Shown here: positions 247 through 10,026 of the stretch, piece after piece
Position numbering within the stretch: position 1 is the first letter of the stretch
Layout of the letters: each line of letters begins with the position of its first letter
Sequence record: OP999027.1
Strand: one strand, 5' to 3'
DNA: 10,026 bases
Made by a program: the position numbers and the translations under genes
The notes under the pieces: generated by a model
Databases searched by the model: none
Seen by the model: only the letters and a program-made list of their open reading frames with translations
Told to the model about the DNA's origin: nothing

Positions 247-266
247 TACAATAAGCTCTTATGATG
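116..266 (+). ncRNA. Putative TnpB omegaRNA (reRNA): scaffold to about 246, guide about 247-266
   Basis: Stems GAGCC116-120/GGCTC132-136, GGGCC142-146/GGCCC197-201, CCTTACG153-159/CGTAAGG186-192, CACCCC204-209/GGGGTG221-226. ATGAACC180-186 is complementary to GGTTCAT240-246 (pseudoknot geometry). The 5' boundary is uncertain. Confidence 0.7.
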
Positions 267-1242
267 CACTATTATCTTTTTCTAACTTCTCCTTCTTCTC
301 CTTTGCCTCATCCTTCATCTTTTCGATTGCATTTACTACATTCATAATCTCATCGGCATCGGCACCGCTTTTAATGCCTAATTTTATGACCTCTAGTTTA
401 GTATTGACGAGGCGCGCATGTGAATCATTTCTTTCTTTTTTCCCCTCTAGTTCTTTCAACTCCTTTTGTAAGTTATCAAGTGATTCAACAATTTCGTTTA
501 TATGTTTTTCTTTTGGCGCGTCTTGATTTTTCTCTTCATCCTTAGTCTCGTCAATTTTTATGTCGCCCGCTTCAACCTTTTTTAGATACAAAATTAACGC
601 AACGCGAAAAACCGTAGACATCGAAAATCCGTTCTTATGAACGTAGTTAAGGAAACGTCTCTTAAGGTCCCATGGTATCATTGACCTAACGACTATATTT
701 CCCTTATACAATTCATCCTTATTTTCTATCTTATCCTTAATTATATAAGCAAGATCAAGGTGCCCATAATGGTCTAAAAACCACTTTATTACGTCAGGTA
801 TGATGTCCTTAATATTCTTTGGGGTAAATTGTACTATATTGGTAAGCTTTCTATATAGCTCATTACTGATGGAAAAATCAATTTCCACCTTCTCATCCTT
901 TCTCATAGTAACATCGTAAAGATAATCGGTAAGTGCTGCAAAAACAACTAAATCTCGAGAGCTCACTTTATTCTTTTCTACATACTCGTTTAGCATCTTT
1001 ACCATATCGTCTGACAATGAAACAGTAATTATATCCTCAAGCGGTGGTGAATTAGCAGTCAGCTTTTGTTCTAACTTCTTTATTTCCCGTAGCACCGCCC
1101 TGAAGCTTTCATTTTTATGCTTATCAAAAAATATCGATAAGGCCCTAGTGACTATTAGATCTTGATTTTCATTTCGTTTTTCTTGTGCTTTTCTCATCAG
1201 CTCTACTAAACCACGTGGTAATCTAAATGTCAAGTAAGGCAA
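259..1242 (-). CDS. Protein with four tandem ribbon-helix-helix (RHH) domains and a C-terminal coiled coil (~327 aa)
   Basis: RHH-like units: YLTFRLPRGLVELMRKAQEKRNENQDLIVTRALSIFF; IITVSLSDDMVKMLNEYVEKNKVSSRDLVVFAALTDYL; VEIDFSISNELYRKLTNIVQFTPKNIKDIIPDVIKWFL; IVVRSMIPWDLKRRFLNYVHKNGFSMSTVFRVALILYL. Start re-called to TTG 1242 (AGGTGG RBS, directly after the upstream stop at 1253); the ORF track extends it to 1317. Confidence 0.82.
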   Translation of the reverse strand: MPYLTFRLPRGLVELMRKAQEKRNENQDLIVTRALSIFFDKHKNESFRAVLREIKKLEQKLTANSPPLEDIITVSLSDDMVKMLNEYVEKNKVSSRDLVVFAALTDYLYDVTMRKDEKVEIDFSISNELYRKLTNIVQFTPKNIKDIIPDVIKWFLDHYGHLDLAYIIKDKIENKDELYKGNIVVRSMIPWDLKRRFLNYVHKNGFSMSTVFRVALILYLKKVEAGDIKIDETKDEEKNQDAPKEKHINEIVESLDNLQKELKELEGKKERNDSHARLVNTKLEVIKLGIKSGADADEIMNVVNAIEKMKDEAKEKKEKLEKDNSAS

Positions 1243-1252
1243 GATGGGCCAC

Positions 1253-2062
1253 CTATGTAGCGAACAGATAATTTTCAGTCTTTGAGGCCGGTGCTGCAAG
1301 CCGCAGAGCCAATTCATCCTTATGCTTTATAGCGAAGATTTTAGACTTTCCGCTGCGTATCTGATCTTGATATGTTTTGCTCAATTCTTCTGCATAACTC
1401 TTTAACACAGCTTCTATATCATTATTATAATCAGCCAGGCTAACTTTCTTTTCCTCAAAAAACCAATTATTGCTTCCTAACATACCAGCAGCAACTAAGT
1501 CCATTTTCGTATCTGCATAAAATACGTCAGCTTCGATAAACGTATCATTACCGTCTATAGGTATAGTGTATCTTTTTAGCTTCTTCATCGCCGTATTTAT
1601 CATATTCATCTTAACCTCCTTATCATGCTCAACATAAGCCAAAGGATCATAGGTAAAGCCAGCTCTTTCGATAAAGTCATTGAAGACATAAATTAGTGGG
1701 GATAAGCCAGACATTATTATTATCAATAGCCTATCTTTAGCCGCATCTAGGTCAAACAAATACTCGCTGTTATGATCGACATTTATTTCAAAAATGAAAG
1801 TGAACATTATTTTTAGTTTTTCTTTGTTGGCAGTGTTATATAGTCTAACACTTAGGTTTATCGCATATGTTGTTTGATTAATCTTTGATATATCTTTCTT
1901 TATGCTAGCTATTTTATAGTTGTACAAGGCGAAAGGCAATAGGCCTTTCTTATATAGCGCGAGACTGTTTCTTAACACGTAGTGTACAAGATCTTCTAAA
2001 GTCTTTTCTTTTACCTTTAAGTGGAGTTGTGTTTTTTCGGGTTCGGATTGGATCTCAAACAT
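1253..2062 (-). CDS. Hypothetical protein (269 aa) with a probable single N-terminal RHH and an unassigned alpha/beta C-terminal region
   Basis: ATG with GGCGGT RBS downstream of a TATA box. QLHLKVKEKTLEDLVHYVLRNSLALYKKGLLPFALYNY aligns with RHH2 of the neighbouring protein (L..YV..N......L..F.AL..Y). Remainder not recognised. Confidence 0.75.
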   Translation of the reverse strand: MFEIQSEPEKTQLHLKVKEKTLEDLVHYVLRNSLALYKKGLLPFALYNYKIASIKKDISKINQTTYAINLSVRLYNTANKEKLKIMFTFIFEINVDHNSEYLFDLDAAKDRLLIIIMSGLSPLIYVFNDFIERAGFTYDPLAYVEHDKEVKMNMINTAMKKLKRYTIPIDGNDTFIEADVFYADTKMDLVAAGMLGSNNWFFEEKKVSLADYNNDIEAVLKSYAEELSKTYQDQIRSGKSKIFAIKHKDELALRLAAPASKTENYLFAT

Positions 2063-2233
2063 TTTACCGCCGATTATTACTGTAGTTATTTAAGCTTATA
2101 AAACTTTCTATCATGAGCTTCATAGCCAAATACGTAAAATTACGTGTTAACATAACAGTATAGTCACAAAAACATAAGGGGAAAAAGGGACTTCACCAAA
2201 ATTGTAGAACTGACATTACAATTCTGTAATTTT
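2060..2233 (-). promoter_or_regulatory. Intergenic cassette copy 1: oligo-T terminator, 36-bp inverted repeat, 14-bp palindrome, BRE/TATA, leader
   Basis: Minus strand GAAAG-TTTTATAAG (2095-2108) is a BRE+TATA. Perfect palindrome ACGTAA-AA-TTACGT 2132-2145; IR AAAATTGTAGAA-N12-TTCTGTAATTTT 2198-2233. About 80% identical by hand to 7197-7340. Confidence 0.8.
2178..2190 (-). terminator. Pyrimidine/oligo-T terminator candidate for the RHH operon ending at 2243
   Basis: Minus strand TCCCTTTTTCCCC about 55 nt after the stop codon; same relative position as the T7 tracts in cassette copies 2 and 3. Confidence 0.5.
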
Positions 2234-2242
2234 ACCAAAAAT

Positions 2243-3487
2243 TTACAAGAGTAGAATTTTAACATTATCTTTATCGATTTCCTTTAGGTAACCGTGATTC
2301 TTAAATGATTCGAACAACTCCGTTGTATTTCTGACAGATTTTATTTTCTTCATCGCGTCTTGGATATCTTGCTTCTTTACTACTGTTCCTTTTTTTAGCC
2401 CAGGATAAAGGCCCGTCTTTAAATCTTCCAAAATTCTTTGCCATACTACGTAAGTTTTAATATCAGACTTTCCAGAGAATCGTTTCTTTGTCCATTGTCT
2501 CAATATTTTTGCTATAATTTTGCCAACTTCAAGCTTAATCGCACTTTCATTAACGCTTAGCTTATAACCATGATGATACCTAAGTATGACATATTCTTTT
2601 AGCAAGTTATAAAGTCGTCCTGATAATGGTACACTGACAAAACGACTTGCACGTCTAGGTTTGGGTTTATTATTTTGTTTCGGTGGGTCATTAGGTGGGT
2701 CATTTGCTTCTTCATTTTGTATAACCTTCTGTTGTTCTGCAGTACTTCCATTCAGCAAATTCAAATGATTCATAATTGCGAGGCGAATAATAGCGCCTTT
2801 AGAAACTAGCGTCTGTTCCGAAATTTTTTCTAATTGTAGTAAAACGCGTATAGGCAACTTTATAGGGAGCTCTTTTTGAGGACCCTTTCCAGAAAATAAG
2901 TTGCTAGCAGTCTCGTGCAGCCTTTTGATTTCCTCAGAGTTATCATCATATTTTTTCAAAAACTCATCAATAGCCTCCCTTATAAGGTCACTTATTGTTA
3001 TGCGTTTTTTTATTACTTCATTCTCAAGGAGTTTGTGTAACTCGTTACTATACTTAAAGCTTGTCTGAACCAACACGTTAAGATCTCCGAAATCTGAAGC
3101 CTCTTGTAGTTTCGTTTTATGCCTTAGCTCATCCCTAGCTCTAGACAATATTTCTTTTACTTTTTCTATATAAGGCCTTTTCTGTCTATCATCAAGATTA
3201 AGGAAGTTATTTATCATGCTCCAAACTATTCTCATAATCGAAAATCCTCTTGAGTTGACATAAATGCGGATCTTCTCCATAGCATCTTCTGGTAATGTTA
3301 AAGAAATTCTTTTTAACTCTTCTTTATTATAATTGGGTGGTAGTGATTCTATAGAGTCTGAAGGATTTTCGGCAAATGCAATAATAGCCGCCCTCATCAA
3401 AAGCCCACCAGGTACACCAAGCCGTTCTGCCTCTTCTACTACTTTATCTAATAATGTTTCAGGAATGATGAAGGTCAGAGACTTCAT
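2243..3487 (-). CDS. Multi-RHH protein (four clear RHH, a possible fifth) with Pro-rich linker and C-terminal winged-helix-like domain (~414 aa)
   Basis: RHH units start at SLTFIIP, RISLTLP, QTSFKYS, ELPIKLP, and possibly FVSVPLS. The C-terminus KKQDIQDAMKKIKSVRNTTELFESFKNHGYLKEIDKDNVKIL has a helix-helix-beta-hairpin wHTH pattern. The first ~250 aa are collinear with the 270-aa neighbour. ATG 3487 preferred over GTG 3496. Confidence 0.85.
   Translation of the reverse strand: MKSLTFIIPETLLDKVVEEAERLGVPGGLLMRAAIIAFAENPSDSIESLPPNYNKEELKRISLTLPEDAMEKIRIYVNSRGFSIMRIVWSMINNFLNLDDRQKRPYIEKVKEILSRARDELRHKTKLQEASDFGDLNVLVQTSFKYSNELHKLLENEVIKKRITISDLIREAIDEFLKKYDDNSEEIKRLHETASNLFSGKGPQKELPIKLPIRVLLQLEKISEQTLVSKGAIIRLAIMNHLNLLNGSTAEQQKVIQNEEANDPPNDPPKQNNKPKPRRASRFVSVPLSGRLYNLLKEYVILRYHHGYKLSVNESAIKLEVGKIIAKILRQWTKKRFSGKSDIKTYVVWQRILEDLKTGLYPGLKKGTVVKKQDIQDAMKKIKSVRNTTELFESFKNHGYLKEIDKDNVKILLL
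2682..2704. repeat. 11-bp direct repeat (period 12) encoding NDPP-NDPP in the linker
   Basis: GGTGGGTCATT at 2682-2692 and 2694-2704. Confidence 0.8.
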
Positions 3488-3492
3488 TCTTA

Positions 3493-4305
3493 TCACGCTA
3501 CCAGTGTTGTGTTTGCTTTGCTAACACTTTGCATAACCTCTTGATGTACGTCAACCAAGTTCAGATATCTCACAATTGCAAGGCGAATGAGCATAGCCCT
3601 AGACACATTAATCTTATCAGCTATTTTAGTTAGCTGTAATAGCATATATGCAGGCACTTTTAAGGAACAATCCTTAGCCGAAACTTCGATATAATACAGA
3701 TGTTTAGCAGCCTCATATAGCTTTTCGATTTTCTCAAAGTTATTACCATATTTCTGCAAAAGATCATCAATAGCCCTTCTTACAAGTTCACTTGCCGTTA
3801 TTCCTCTTTCACGTACCTCTTTTGCAAGTAGTTTACGTAAGTCATCTAGACATCTAAAACTTATTGGAACCAGCCGATAAGGTTCTTTTGAAGCAATATT
3901 TTCCAGTAATTGAAGCGAATGCTCTTTGTCTCGTTTTCTCTTTCTCTTCTCTGTTATCTTTCTTACCTCTTTTTTGATATAGATTAGTTTTTGCTCATCA
4001 CTTAAATTAAGAAAATCGGCTACCGTCCTCTCCGCTACTTTTCTCGCCGGAAGGCCTTTTGCAGCAGCGTAAGAATAAATTTTTTCTAAAGTGTCTTTTT
4101 GCAATGCTAAACAAACTTTTGTTATTTCTTTTCGTCCAGACCCGCCGATTGCGTTTGGTAATGGTTTTATAGAGTCTGGCGGGTTTTCTGCAAACGTCTG
4201 AATTGCAGCACTCAGCAAAAGTGTTCGTTTTACATTAAAACGCGACGCTTCTTCATTTACCTTGTTAAGTAAAGAGATACGTATTGAAAAGCATAAATAT
4301 GCCAT
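3493..4305 (-). CDS. Four-RHH protein (~270 aa), paralog of the N-terminal part of the 414-aa protein
   Basis: RHH units at YLCFSIR, KVCLALQ, PISFRCL, CSLKVPA. Motifs shared with the neighbour include FAENP.DSI..LP, FLNL.D.QK..YI, LLQL.KI and IRLAI...LNL. ATG 4305 follows GGGTGA RBS (track start GTG 4314). Confidence 0.87.
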   Translation of the reverse strand: MAYLCFSIRISLLNKVNEEASRFNVKRTLLLSAAIQTFAENPPDSIKPLPNAIGGSGRKEITKVCLALQKDTLEKIYSYAAAKGLPARKVAERTVADFLNLSDEQKLIYIKKEVRKITEKRKRKRDKEHSLQLLENIASKEPYRLVPISFRCLDDLRKLLAKEVRERGITASELVRRAIDDLLQKYGNNFEKIEKLYEAAKHLYYIEVSAKDCSLKVPAYMLLQLTKIADKINVSRAMLIRLAIVRYLNLVDVHQEVMQSVSKANTTLVA

Positions 4306-4316
4306 TTTTATCACCC

Positions 4317-4637
4317 TTACACTAGCTTGAAATAGGCTGCTAATGCAGTCCGTATGAGGTCGCTCTTATTCGTTCTTATTTTTTCTGCTACAATATCTAG
4401 CTGAGTGTTGAGACTCTCAGGAAGCCTTATGGAAATTACGTACTTACCTGAATAGGGAGAAGTCTTTTTGCTTAACTCCATTATCTCATCATTATTATGC
4501 TGTAAAAGCCTCATCACTGCCTCCTTTATAATTGCGGTTTTTGTGGTGTTAGTTTTTTCAGCCTCTTCCTTTAGCTTTAAAATAAGGCTAGATGCACACT
4601 TGAAGCTTATCTGTTTTAAGGGTTCTTTCTCTAACAT
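4317..4637 (-). CDS. Two-RHH protein (106 aa), CopG/Arc-like single-chain tandem RHH
   Basis: KQISFKCASSLILKLKEEAEKTNTTKTAIIKEAVMRLL and YVISIRLPESLNTQLDIVAEKIRTNKSDLIRTALAAYF are both textbook RHH patterns. ATG 4637 with GGTGGT RBS (track start GTG 4655 lies in the leader). Confidence 0.9.
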   Translation of the reverse strand: MLEKEPLKQISFKCASSLILKLKEEAEKTNTTKTAIIKEAVMRLLQHNNDEIMELSKKTSPYSGKYVISIRLPESLNTQLDIVAEKIRTNKSDLIRTALAAYFKLV

Positions 4638-4790
4638 TTTACCACCAATTAACACTGTAGTTTTTCTAGATTAAAAAACTATCTATCATGAGTTACATAA
4701 AGAAAACCGTAAAATCTTGTGATATTATGAAACGATGATCACGTAAAATGATTGTTAAAAAAAGGAATTTGCCAAAATTGGTGAATTCTG
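4635..4790 (-). promoter_or_regulatory. Intergenic cassette copy 2 (distal inverted repeat truncated by the upstream gene end)
   Basis: TTAAAAAACTATCTATCATGA at 4671-4691 is identical to 7202-7222. CGTAAAAT, GAAACGAT, A7-GG (4757-4765) and CCAAAATTG are collinear with the other copies. Leader 4635-4662 matches 2060-2087 at 24/28. Confidence 0.75.
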
Positions 4791-4791
4791 T

Positions 4792-5364
4792 CTAGTTATT
4801 CATATTATCATTAATTTTCATTATAATATTCGCTATCGTTTTAAAGGCTAATTTGCCATAAGGATAAAGTTCGATTTGAATGTTTTTAGAAGCCTCATAA
4901 ACTATCTTGTAATGGTGTTTAGGCAAAACCGCAACTATTCTTTTATGGATATTGTGGGCATGAGAGAGTGCAATGGAAAGTAGTTTGATGAACTCTTGTT
5001 TTTCTTCTTCAGTCATCAAAGAAGGAGGATAATCATAAGAATTGAAAGGGTAACAGTTCTCTAATTCTCTAGGGACTAACAACATCGGCTCAGAGACAGA
5101 ATACACTTGAACCTTATCCTCAAGTTTATACTTTCGTAGCAAGGAATAAGCTAGTTTGTGTGTGGCTGACTTATTATAAGGCTTAACTGATGTACAAGGT
5201 AATAAAAGCGCTATTTCTTTTTTGGAATACCAGTTGTTGAGAAAGTACTCATGCCATTTTTTTACCACAGGATGTTGGAATGGGTCAAAGCCAGGCTTTT
5301 TTATTATTTTTTCGCCTGAGCCAAGATACTTCTCTAAGGGTTCACAGCCTTCTACATAACTCAT
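4792..5364 (-). CDS. Stand-alone ArcS-like catalytic domain (DUF5591-type; archaeosine synthase C1 region), no PUA domain
   Basis: PCTSVKPYNKSATH (aa 56-69, nt 5158-5199) matches the ArcS signature PCx3KPYx2Sx2H exactly; followed by VSEPMLLVPRELE..YP...YDYP, typical of this domain. Only 190 aa. Confidence 0.85.
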   Translation of the reverse strand: MSYVEGCEPLEKYLGSGEKIIKKPGFDPFQHPVVKKWHEYFLNNWYSKKEIALLLPCTSVKPYNKSATHKLAYSLLRKYKLEDKVQVYSVSEPMLLVPRELENCYPFNSYDYPPSLMTEEEKQEFIKLLSIALSHAHNIHKRIVAVLPKHHYKIVYEASKNIQIELYPYGKLAFKTIANIIMKINDNMNN

Positions 5365-6205
5365 TTATTTCCGCCTCTGGGTCTGTTATATTATGAGAGT
5401 ACTTAATAAGAGGGTGATCTGCCTCATACTCACTATGTAGCAAGACCCATACATTAATAAATGATCTATCTATCCAATTGTCAAACCTTATAGGAAATGG
5501 GTAGTGAGTCTTCTCTAGAAAGTCCTTAAGTGATTCAAGTTCATCTTCACTAATTCTTCTAGCACCCCAACTTATTTTTCTCTCTCCAACATACCTTTCT
5601 CCTTTTCCAGGCAATAACACCATACCATGTATTGCCTTTACTCTATAAGTTGATGTGTCAACACTATCAGCATCATAAAAAACCTTTCTCATGAAAGGAG
5701 AACCAGCACCTAAAACGTGAATTTTACCCTTCCATTCTTTTCTAACAAGGCGATACATCGCAACTGCTAGCTTTTGACTGGCTACCTTATTAAGAGATGG
5801 TGGAACTATCCCACCAAATGCGATATAATCCGTATATTGAGAGTAGAAATCAATAGCCTTTTTAATGCTTTCAACATCATAAGCGTGAATGACTGGTATT
5901 ATATTCTTATCCAGTTTCGTGTATAAGTACTCAAAATGCTTGAAATTAAGCTCTGAAGGCTTTTCGCAAGGTGTTGCAGGTATATCGAGACTAATGTAAT
6001 AGTCTGCATCAAGCCTCTTGTATTTATCTAATACGGCATCTACACTAATCTGCATTTTTTTAACCATTATTTGATAGCCACCAGAATCTACCCACGTTTC
6101 ATTTTCCCATTCTACAAAGTCCCACACAAGCTGATTAATCATCAGTGGTACACCTAACTCCCATAACTTCACCCTACTATCAGGCAAACCTAAAATAATC
6201 TTCAT
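5342..6205 (-). CDS. tRNA-guanine transglycosylase-fold protein, DpdA-like (candidate DNA 7-deazaguanine transglycosylase)
   Basis: TGT motifs DSGGYQ, SLDIP, PVIH, FGG, HVLGAGSP and DSVDTST, with both catalytic Asp positions present. No CxCxxC zinc site and no PUA domain; His where tRNA TGTs have QG. ATG 6205 preferred; the track start GTG 6247 overlaps the upstream gene. Confidence 0.85.
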   Translation of the reverse strand: MKIILGLPDSRVKLWELGVPLMINQLVWDFVEWENETWVDSGGYQIMVKKMQISVDAVLDKYKRLDADYYISLDIPATPCEKPSELNFKHFEYLYTKLDKNIIPVIHAYDVESIKKAIDFYSQYTDYIAFGGIVPPSLNKVASQKLAVAMYRLVRKEWKGKIHVLGAGSPFMRKVFYDADSVDTSTYRVKAIHGMVLLPGKGERYVGERKISWGARRISEDELESLKDFLEKTHYPFPIRFDNWIDRSFINVWVLLHSEYEADHPLIKYSHNITDPEAEINELCRRL

Positions 6206-6224
6206 ATCCTTACCATTTTTCTCC

Positions 6225-7196: not shown

Positions 7197-7340
7197 TTAG
7201 CTTAAAAAACTATCTATCATGAACTCCATAGTCAAAAACGTAAAATTATGTGTTAACACGAAACGATAGTCAAAAAACTTGAGAGGAAAAAAAGGGGCTT
7301 CTCCAAAATTGTAGAACTATCATGACAATTCTACAAATTT
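7197..7340 (-). promoter_or_regulatory. Intergenic cassette copy 3
   Basis: 54/62 identity of 7197-7258 to 2091-2152 and 36/43 of 7298-7340 to 2191-2233. IR AAAATTGTAGAA(7305-7316)-N12-TTCTACAAATTT(7329-7340); near-palindrome ACGTAAAATTATGT 7238-7251; T7 tract (A7 on + at 7287-7293). Confidence 0.82.
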
Positions 7341-7377
7341 GCTACCATCACGAATTTTTCTCGTACTAATGAGATTT

Positions 7378-7392
7378 AAAAAAAGGGAAAAA
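7378..7392 (-). terminator. Oligo-T terminator candidate for the thyX operon
   Basis: Minus strand TTTTTCCCTTTTTTT about 70 nt after the thyX stop. Confidence 0.5.
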
Positions 7393-7401
7393 TTTAGCGA
7401 T

Positions 7402-7441
7402 AAAAGTTCGAAGTTCCTGTATATAGCAAAAGTTCGAAGTT
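7402..7441. repeat. Perfect 14-bp direct repeat AAAAGTTCGAAGTT (period 26)
   Basis: Copies at 7402-7415 and 7428-7441, separated by CCTGTATATAGC. Confidence 0.85.
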
Positions 7442-7462
7442 TGAAAATAAGCTTTCATCACT

Positions 7463-8239
7463 TCAAATCGAGTCAATAACACCACGTGAATTAATGACGC
7501 ATTTTATAATTCCATCCCTATTAACTCCTTCAATACATCTTTGAGATATAAACTCTATATTGTGATTTTTAAGTACATCATCTAAAGTTATATACTCATT
7601 TCTTATGAAATTCTCGTGTATTATGCAATTTGGCCCAGCATATCTAAATAATCTTGGGTGAACTTTCTTTACTTCCTCTAACATTCTCCACGCAATTGCT
7701 CTAATTTCCCATTGAGCTCTTGAACAGAGCCTTAGGGAAAAGAAATTATATAATTCCCTAGCATTCATACTTACTACGATGTTTGTATTAACAGCGTTTG
7801 GCAAAACATAACGCGCATCCTCTTCGGGTATTCCGCTCTTCAACAATTCATAATAAATTTCATAAGCATTATTGTAAGCTTTGTTAACTAGCTCATGAAC
7901 ATCCCTCTTTTTAATGCTAATAGGTATTATTGGCTTATAATATTCATCTATTGGCCTAGCAAACCTATGAGACATTTGCGTATAAGAGGCTATTCTATGC
8001 CTAACAAGCTGATGAGACGCAACCCTAGAAATTCCCTCAATAGAAAAAGTATAAACTGAATGCTCTAACACAGACCAATACCCATGTAGAATTGCATCCC
8101 TAATCCATGTCTCAATCTCGTCATCACTCATTTCTTTTTCATGATAATCCCAACCTTTCCTACTCCTACTCATTTTAGCCGCAATCGCTACTACCTTTTC
8201 ACCATCAGGTGAATATGATACTAGTCTGACTATCATCAC
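7463..8239 (-). CDS. thyX: Flavin-dependent thymidylate synthase ThyX
   Basis: ThyX motif RHRxxSxxxxSxR ([13 protein letters not shown]), plus SVLEH, ARYVLP and [12 protein letters not shown]. Start GTG 8239 or ATG 8236. Confidence 0.97.
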
Positions 8240-9608: not shown

Positions 9609-9937
9609 ACTTCGCCTTATGCAAATGGCTTGAGGCCCTCCCAATAATCTCTTTTTCACTTTTTCCCTTAGAGGGATTATAAACGAATACTAATACTAGC
9701 ACGTCAGGCGGATTTTTGCCTGGGTAAACGTGAACATAAACATTAACATCAGGCATTTCCTCAATATCACAAATATAAAGTGCCCAATTTGTCTTTTTGT
9801 ATAAAAAGCCGTCACACTTCGATGTTTTGTAACGTGTTACTTCGCTAAGTCTATTTTCTGCCCAAGTAAATAATTCAATGAGTTCTTTTTTTAATTGTTC
9901 CGAAATTACGCTCTGCGCAGAAATTATTTATCCCCAT
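9559..9937 (-). pseudogene. Probable ~125-aa gene with a single frameshift near its 5' end (or a non-AUG start); the track shows only its last 65 aa
   Basis: The frame of 9559-9756 stays open to 9927 (IISAQSVISEQLKKELIELFTWAENRLSEVTRYKTSKCDGFLYKKTNWALYICDIEE-MPDV...) with no ATG/GTG/TTG before 9756. An ATG at 9937 sits one base out of frame, downstream of a TTTAAAAA box (9956-9963). Confidence 0.55.
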
Positions 9938-10026
9938 TTTTGTTTCTCGTTTATATTTTTAAACATTTCGAAGTAAAAAGTAAAGTTTATTAACTTTTAC
10001 ATCGTTACTTATGATAGCCCCCAATG

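Follow-up and report, generated by a model that had tools for sequence, protein, structure and literature searches.

Two recurrent intergenic palindromes of the spindle-shaped viruses STSV1-4 as candidate protein-binding sites

Which protein, if any, reads the palindromes that precede operons of Sulfolobus tengchongensis spindle-shaped virus 4 (STSV4)? The stretch of DNA considered here, called the window throughout, is the whole 10,026-bp STSV4 contig OP999027.1, which carries a promoter cassette in three paralogous copies preceding the operons that start at 2062, 4637 and 7163. A first-pass annotation had noticed two palindromes in this cassette, one of 14 bp (here termed box P) and an inverted repeat of 36 bp, and had interpreted them as operators of the cassette that are bound by the neighbouring multi-ribbon-helix-helix (RHH) proteins in an autoregulatory circuit.

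We compared the window with the complete genomes of STSV1 and STSV2 and with five STSV3/STSV4 contigs, and found 83-90% identity to parts of STSV1, STSV2 and STSV3. A search of a plasmid collection gave no match. Both palindromes are present and recurrent in these viruses, with synteny, arm-wise conservation and fixed spacing among their copies, and they probably belong to the cis-regulatory vocabulary of the whole STSV1-4 clade and not to one circuit. The reading that we favour, to which we assign about an even chance, is that box P would be an upstream element of a large class of strong promoters, that the inverted repeat would be the core of a 48-bp tripartite protein-binding palindrome at about ten unit boundaries per genome, and that the two would share a common recognition word.

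The inverted repeat as part of a 48-bp palindrome

The arms of the inverted repeat at 2198-2209/2222-2233 and 7305-7316/7329-7340 are complementary at 10/12 and 11/12 positions, respectively, as had been counted before. The arms are thus present, but the description as a 36-bp repeat with a 12-nt spacer was too small: the presumed spacer is the conserved centre of a palindrome whose symmetry extends to +/-24 bp. The AT-rich window contains 23 repeats with 12-nt arms (at least 10/12 complementary, spacer of at most 20 nt) compared with about 16 in Markov resamples, and the repeat at 2198-2233 taken alone lies within chance; we consider it real because it recurs in STSV1-4. A profile built from the two window copies retrieved the repeat in STSV1-4 with nhmmer at E values of 1e-8 to 1e-12. 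The 18-bp core with at most two mismatches was found six times in STSV1, five times in STSV2 and once in the window, against 0.0 expected.

The copies of the 48-bp palindrome in the window are the following:

2192-2239, minus strand: copy 1; encloses 2198-2233 and starts 3 nt after the stop codon of the gene for the 417-amino-acid (aa) RHH protein
7299-7346, minus strand: copy 3; encloses 7305-7340 and lies 116 nt after the thyX stop codon
4768-4785, minus strand: remnant in cassette 2; one third of the repeat is left, namely the promoter-proximal 18-bp unit (TTC-N12-AAA)

In a gapless alignment of 22 copies the centre of the palindrome is close to GAATTGTCATGACAATTC, and near-invariant columns with TTC or GAA follow each other every 15 bp, which results in three overlapping 18-bp palindromic units (TTC-N12-GAA-N12-TTC-N12-GAA). 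The triplets between the invariant columns drift freely. Unit centres are accordingly 15 bp apart, and RAATT boxes within the element are spaced by 9, 14 and 9 bp. The copy at L005:28665-28712 in STSV1 is palindromic without a mismatch over all 48 bp. Outer units and box P are similar and have the core GTAAATTTAC in common; exact GTAAATTTAC occurs five times in STSV1 (0.1 expected), and with one mismatch it is found in the window at 2134 (box P) and 2226 (outer unit). STSV3 also has solo outer units and perfect CGGTAAATTTACCG. A fixed polarity of the element, with its GGWGAA side towards the downstream gene, was considered and dropped, as the left arm has the same words in reversed form and some copies are symmetric to +/-30.

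Genomic spread of the 48-bp element

We found nine sites in STSV1, about ten in STSV2, seven in three STSV3 contigs, and four plus the remnant in STSV4, where two copies lie beyond the cassettes in contigs OP999035 and OP999036. All copies are intergenic, and seven of the nine STSV1 sites are located at the same gene junction in STSV2. Solo copies without the cassette have been kept at syntenic intergenic positions of four viruses. Most of the sites stand in front of unrelated genes, for instance at the junction of the dUTPase gene and the giant open reading frame (ORF) 34, at a membrane-protein operon, and at the divergent pairs ORF37/38, 66/67 and 71/72. At these three pairs, which account for 3/9 STSV1 copies, the element lies between divergent promoters with their TATA boxes and no gene ends there. 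In tandem contexts it starts 3-27 nt past the upstream stop codon. The centre of the palindrome in cassettes lies about 144 bp upstream of the inferred start site, and the core promoter is not overlapped.

Within the collections searched, only the STSV clade has the element. The exact 18-bp core was absent from Sulfolobales species representatives, a search that covered the exact form only and no degenerate forms. In the genome collection the exact core gave eight matches, all in unrelated bacteria, and in the metagenome collection 26 matches, none with STSV-type flanks; one of the 26, on a human-gut metagenome contig, was excluded from analysis. The exact core in IMG/VR was found only in STSV1 and three unrelated contigs, and an IMG/VR search with an RHH protein and the 269-aa protein of the window returned only STSV1 and STSV2 as relatives. 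A mobile palindromic element resembling miniature inverted-repeat transposable elements or repetitive extragenic palindromes was rejected, given the synteny of 7/9 STSV1 sites in STSV2 and the lack of the exact core in any Sulfolobales representative.

Two loci bear signs of exchange. One STSV3 copy (L007:5770-5860) is a mosaic: it consists, in this order, of a solo outer unit flanked as at the dUTPase junction, a left flank and palindrome of the ORF37/38 type, and a right flank of the dUTPase type. This suggests recombination or gene conversion between copies. Furthermore, the orthologues STSV2_12 (L004:12270-12470) and STSV1 ORF15 (L003:16575-16727) have different promoters, the former of the cassette type with palindrome and the latter of the second promoter family described below, which indicates that promoter modules were exchanged between viruses.

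Box P and the promoter cassettes

The 14-bp palindrome at 2132-2145, with 6-bp arms and an AA centre, and its copy with one mismatch at 7238-7251 were both confirmed. With at most two mismatches the 14-mer has three matches in the window (0.09 expected), and none of 200 shuffles reaches three. The copies in the window are:

2132-2145, minus strand: box P of cassette 1; 28 bp from the TATA octamer, with its centre about 67 bp before the inferred start site
7238-7251, minus strand: box P of cassette 3; one mismatch, in the distal arm
4707-4720, minus strand: box P of cassette 2; proximal arm kept, distal arm degenerate, three arm mismatches

Both palindromes had initially been described as conserved sites of the cassette. 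This holds for cassettes 1 and 3, but cassette 2 is degenerate, and both elements are also found outside cassettes. A second TTTTACGT word is found in cassette 2 at 4741-4748, 21 bp upstream of the degenerate box P; the other cassettes have GTTTTTGTGAC at this place.

The ideal box P is the perfect palindrome ACGTAAATTTACGT. Box P is shared by 12 cassette promoters of STSV1-4 and a second promoter family. The latter has diverged strongly and precedes STSV1 ORF1, 2, 4-7, 9-11 and 15 and their STSV2 counterparts, mostly predicted anti-defence genes (PMC11065993). In the cassettes the promoter-proximal arm TTTACG is kept in 12/12 cases (one a single-base variant) and the distal arm is perfect in 3/12; the second family carries a related box at the same place, with the distal arm usually better kept. 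Across 25 STSV1 and STSV2 promoters the left half-site is intact in 17 and the right one in 18, both are intact in ten, and in none are both lost. Box P is situated upstream of the transcription factor B recognition element (BRE) without overlapping it, its centre being near -67. The distance to the TATA box is fixed: STSV1 has 11 instances of box P with at most three mismatches and a TATA 29 +/- 1 bp further on, compared with 0-1 in shuffles, a count in which promoters share ancestry and do not represent independent events. The spacing of 29 bp is maintained in two promoter families with unrelated intervening sequence. Loss of either half but never of both, together with a spacer free of insertions and deletions, is what would be expected of a dimer site in register with the initiation complex. 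Some 20 non-RHH genes likewise have box P in front of them.

The core promoters of the window are listed here together with the third cassette copy:

2096-2111, minus strand: BRE/TATA core of cassette 1, ATAGAAAG and TTTTATAA; near match to the strong-promoter consensus (PMC11065993)
4671-4686, minus strand: BRE/TATA core of cassette 2; drives the RHH operon ORF7-ORF6-ORF5
7202-7217, minus strand: BRE/TATA core of cassette 3; drives ORF12-ORF11-DpdA-ArcS2 (DpdA and ArcS2 are putative labels)
4638-4791: cassette 2 as a whole, the third copy in the window; degenerate box P and partial repeat

The BRE/TATA block is almost invariant across 12 aligned cassette copies of STSV1-4. An STSV2 RNA contig starts 25 nt past the homologous TATA box and 9 nt before the ATG of gene 24 in two of four RNA-seq runs. 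In the other two runs contigs cover the gene-24 cassette, so that some read-through RNA includes the repeat. This RNA evidence consists of assembled contigs, which report presence and do not resolve transcript ends. We infer a cassette start site about 9 nt upstream of the ATG and 25 nt after the TATA box, with which the RNA contigs are compatible without proving it. RNA-seq contigs also span a cassette with truncated palindrome (L014:4848-5007, STSV2 20869-21028) from gene 21 into gene 22 in 4/4 runs.

Between box P and BRE the second family carries a conserved ATAATACCGT in STSV1, which the window cassettes lack:

L003:2685-2696, 3756-3767, 5144-5155, 6198-6209, 7448-7459, 9903-9914 and 16652-16663: ATAATACCGT in STSV1

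The reverse complement of ATAATACCGT includes GTATTA, the seed of the box recognized by the Sulfolobales cell-cycle regulator aCcr1 (PMC9976892). aCcr1 binds a 9-bp box between TATA and start codon and has viral gp21 homologues (PMC9976878, PMC9976892). Through GTATTA, ATAATACCGT may tie early viral promoters to this host cell-cycle factor.

DNA site versus hairpin

The first-pass annotation had left open whether the sites are bound by proteins or form a cruciform. Over the 22 copies the pair count was 78.2% standard pairs, compared with 77.1 +/- 0.9% for shuffled partners, and 50 of 500 shuffles reached the observed value. Slid-register controls were paired at 30-48%, which shows that the palindrome register is real. 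The covariation score was 0.181 versus 0.164 +/- 0.013, with 51/500 shuffles reaching 0.181. Given this absence of covariation, the symmetry stems from the likeness of each arm to the consensus and not from compensation. That the right arms differ between the two window copies and are still largely symmetric with the left arm, as had been remarked earlier, is therefore true as counted, but does not reflect covariation.

Folding with ViennaRNA at 75 and 80 °C, temperatures to which the energy parameters had to be extrapolated, resulted in 0 kcal/mol for most copies, and only the perfect STSV1 copy was clearly folded. For the window copies the values at 75-80 °C were 0.0 (copy 1) and -2.3 and -1.2 kcal/mol (copy 3). 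In hosts with reverse gyrase, DNA is relaxed to positively supercoiled and cruciform extrusion is unlikely. A hairpin or cruciform was rejected as main explanation on the basis of the pair count and the folding at 75-80 °C. Protein binding fits better because there is no compensatory change, because melting is predicted at 75-80 °C, and because copies are located between divergent promoters. Of the two possibilities raised at first, behaviour as a protein site thus agrees with the arm conservation, the fixed box P spacing and the synteny, whereas the cruciform is disfavoured.

A working model and its alternatives

In the favoured reading, sequence-specific proteins would dock on both palindromes as double-stranded DNA; binding, regulatory effect and protein identity are inferences. 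A dimeric factor on box P would touch or block the initiation complex from upstream, and box P occupancy would set the activity of the strong-promoter class, i.e. of the cassette and of the predicted early and anti-defence promoters. A multimeric protein on the 48-bp element would cover about 4.5 helical turns, and the bound element might act as a boundary or roadblock between transcription units as well as a distal regulator of the neighbouring promoter or promoters.

Several observations weigh against this model. The distance from the end of the palindrome to the next annotated TATA box varies from 12 to 92 bp, unlike that of a classical operator. The copies arose by duplication, probably with gene conversion among them, so their recurrence is not independent and significance is overstated by the shuffle controls. 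Intact sites are missing from the cassette of the main RHH operon (ORF7-ORF6-ORF5). The units are 15 bp or about 1.5 turns apart, which is not the usual spacing of RHH subsites, as these generally lie about one helical turn or less apart. Folding at 37 °C yields -10.8 and -15.0 kcal/mol for the sense strand (z-scores -2.7 and -4.1) versus -7.0 and -8.0 kcal/mol for the antisense strand, which leaves some room for a role as RNA. G.U pairs are likewise in excess on the sense strand (55 vs 40 cells, 14 copies vs 4), a tally over related copies, with part of the bias due to two outer columns.

The relatedness of the copies bears on a first alternative, according to which the elements would be functionless passengers of a duplicated promoter cassette, kept alike by gene conversion and at most serving as recombination substrates. 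The cassettes are plainly paralogous, the mosaic STSV3 copy joins the flanks of two loci, STSV2_12 and its orthologue STSV1 ORF15 carry different promoter modules, and the number of RHH genes varies, all of which would be in line with passengers. We nevertheless regard this alternative as unlikely: in four viruses solo 48-bp copies have been retained at syntenic sites that lack the cassette, the invariant columns form a symmetric pattern as the triplets between them drift freely, and box P keeps its 29-bp spacing despite a replaced spacer, with 0/25 promoters having lost both half-sites.

A role of the inverted repeat as RNA, namely as a 3'-end hairpin of the upstream operon that would aid termination or end protection together with a T tract, appears improbable as well. 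Its position 3-27 nt after the stop codon in tandem contexts would suit such a hairpin, as would the CCC-T5-7-CCC tract that follows in cassettes, the better folding of the sense strand at 37 °C with its mild G.U excess, and the STSV2 contigs covering the cassette in 2/4 runs. These points are opposed by the lack of compensatory changes in 22 copies, most of which are unstable at 75-80 °C, by the 3/9 STSV1 copies between divergent promoters and by several solo copies without T tract. Moreover, archaeal termination requires oligo-T and is not known to need a hairpin. Because archaeal RNA polymerase terminates at oligo-T, the C-flanked T tract, rather than the palindrome, is the probable stop signal of the upstream operon. 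The tract is kept in 12/12 cassettes and missing at several solo palindrome sites; in the window it is found at two positions:

2178-2189, minus strand: C-flanked T5 tract (CCC-T5-CCCC) directly downstream of the palindrome in cassette 1
7285-7297, minus strand: T tract of cassette 3, the counterpart of the tract at 2178-2189

Multi-RHH proteins and other candidate binders

Returning to the protein-binding model, the window encodes four proteins with RHH motifs, the first three of which are candidate binders by inference only:

4317-4637, minus strand: ORF7, 106 aa, two RHH motifs in one chain; candidate binder
3493-4314, minus strand: ORF6, four RHH motifs; candidate binder
2243-3496, minus strand: ORF5, four RHH motifs and a C-terminal part of about 170 aa; candidate binder
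259-1317, minus strand: ORF2, two clear and up to two weak RHH motifs; phrog_9615 family, driven by cassette 1

These proteins belong to a virus-specific family, phrog_9615, with phrog_876 annotated as 'transcriptional repressor' (PHROGs), and the number of RHH genes differs between the viruses. The earlier statements that there are four-RHH chains (ORF5 and ORF6 have four motifs each) and that two cassettes (1 and 2) drive operons for RHH proteins were both borne out. An AlphaFold2 model of ORF7 from a three-sequence alignment was of low confidence, with a predicted local distance difference test (pLDDT) score of 52.6, and is usable only for the order strand-helix-helix, which occurs twice. 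A sequence search of solved structures with the STSV RHH proteins retrieved nothing below E 0.4. The RHH proteins of STSV2 have been described as several and divergent, with role and targets not determined (PMC9976892).

The amplified multi-RHH family is the best, although unproven, candidate binder because each chain holds one or two single-chain RHH pairs, and binding by the four-RHH chains is plausible. A viral binder is also mildly favoured by the confinement of the element to the STSV clade and the absence of the core from Sulfolobales representatives. The link to the RHH proteins is weakened because in the ORF7-ORF6-ORF5 cassette box P is the worst of all and the repeat is reduced to one third. 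In its most specific form the model would make the 48-bp element a genome-wide boundary site on which linked RHH pairs each dock on one 15-bp-phased unit, with paralogous chains on box P. We consider this form rather unlikely. If it were true, the RHH family and its roughly 30 sites per genome would constitute a master transcription programme of the large spindle-shaped viruses, with a mode of RHH-DNA recognition and of genome-wide viral control that is not known to have been described in archaea.

The narrower proposal of the first-pass annotation, in which the palindromes are operators of the neighbouring multi-RHH proteins and form a private autoregulatory loop, finds no support and appears very unlikely. 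Cassettes 1 and 2 do drive RHH operons, ORF5 and ORF6 do have four motifs each, and the RHH proteins match repressor families in PHROGs. However, most copies of both elements precede non-RHH genes, and cassette 2, which drives ORF7-ORF6-ORF5, is the poorest, with a box P of three mismatches and one third of the repeat, a state shared by the cassettes of the orthologues STSV1 ORF20 and STSV2 gene 17. BRE, TATA and start site of the cassettes all lie outside both elements.

There is a similarly low chance that a host protein binds the elements, be it an Lrp-like or another Sulfolobales regulator or the CRISPR-repeat-binding protein Cbp1, and that the virus thereby plugs into a host circuit. STSV1 and STSV2 keep the sites despite different hosts, and the central unit has GAATTG twice, inverted. 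This word is also contained in the 3' part of the CRISPR repeats, in which the Cbp1 core motif lies. Sites of Cbp1 are numerous outside CRISPR arrays as well; their 6-bp core, in which the AA and TT positions matter, is close to the 3' end of the repeat (PMC10883916). The likeness to the Cbp1 site is, however, restricted to a hexamer and does not include the following A-rich part whose mutation weakens binding (PMC10883916). The exact 18-bp core occurs in no Sulfolobales representative, a statement limited to this form and not extending to degenerate ones, and in the collections searched the elements are confined to the STSV clade.

Relation to known systems

A consensus regulatory sequence with strong BRE/TATA has been reported for STSV1 and STSV2, its carriers being ORF1, 2, 4, 6, 9, 11 and 72, and inverted repeats near a promoter of SMV2 were taken there as repressor sites (Bhoobalan-Chitty et al. 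2024, PMC11065993). The cassettes and the listed STSV1/2 promoters have in common a strong BRE/TATA and flanking sequence shared within one viral genome. Like those anti-defence promoters, the cassettes have box P at the same 29-bp distance, and their core is nearly identical to the strong-promoter consensus. They differ in that the window genes lead operons, which were excluded by that pipeline, and that no cassette-driven gene is in the list; in addition, the 48-bp element lies outside the 100-bp search window of that study.

Cis-regulatory palindromes beside archaeal virus promoters are already known, and the STSV element is unusual in its size, phasing and genome-wide spread. Crenarchaeal viral RHH regulators acting on short repeated or palindromic promoter sites are SvtR of SIRV1, AvtR of AFV6, which has two RHH motifs in one chain, and F55 of SSV1. 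Their boxes are short and located at or beside the core promoter, whereas the STSV sites are found at about -67 and, with a length of 48 bp, up to about 144 bp upstream. In cluster A mycobacteriophages, tens of stoperator copies in short intergenic regions are read by one regulator (the gp71 repressor in L5); stoperators are 13 bp long, asymmetric and strictly oriented. The STSV element resembles them in that many copies of one site are scattered intergenically in a viral genome, and differs from these asymmetric, oriented sites of a bacterial virus in being a 48-bp palindrome with no established polarity. The inverted repeat followed by oligo-T right after the stop codon in cassettes is reminiscent of intrinsic terminators, unlike which the STSV arms are AU-rich and mismatched, show no covariation, are predicted to be unstable at growth temperature and also occur at places without a gene end.

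The literature searched, which did not extend to the STSV1/STSV2 genome and STSV2 transcriptome papers, contained no description of the 48-bp element. Almost nothing is known about how the large tailed spindle viruses (STSV1/2 and relatives) regulate their genes, and the catalogue of sites is now concrete and testable, all the more as STSV2 grows in the genetically tractable S. islandicus REY15A. Should one regulator read both elements, it would open access to the early/late switch of this virus group and to the expression of its anti-defence genes.

Genes and further features of the window

All real genes of the window are on the minus strand. In addition to the four RHH-motif proteins (ORF7, ORF6, ORF5, ORF2) and the 269-aa protein of unknown function, they encode ThyX, two helical paralogues and a DUF5591 protein. 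The DUF5591 gene overlaps a gene of 301 aa whose counterpart in STSV1/2 is annotated as queuine tRNA-ribosyltransferase. For ORF7 the annotation and the STSV2 orthologues agree on the ATG at 4637 as the true start.

Two direct copies of AAGTTCGAAGTT flank a TATATAGC word at window positions 7404-7441, and the same arrangement is found at L003:18500-18535, L005:8439-8476 and L006:20837-20874. In STSV1 the module lies next to copies of the 48-bp palindrome downstream of thyX, and it is also found at two junctions of convergent genes in STSV1 and STSV2. The module might be a small unannotated promoter or a further protein site. The annotated plus-strand ORF14 (7339-7479), which lies over the module, looks spurious.

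The window also holds the 3' end of a TnpB gene (IS200/IS605 OrfB) and an insertion sequence end beginning with AAAAAGTAAAGTTTATTAA (1-230 and 9961-10026). This AAAAAGTAAAGTTTATTAA end directly adjoins palindrome copies at two loci in STSV1 and at one locus in STSV2 (L005:13780-13860; L006:12300-12380), which suggests that the intergenic sites may be preferred landing places.

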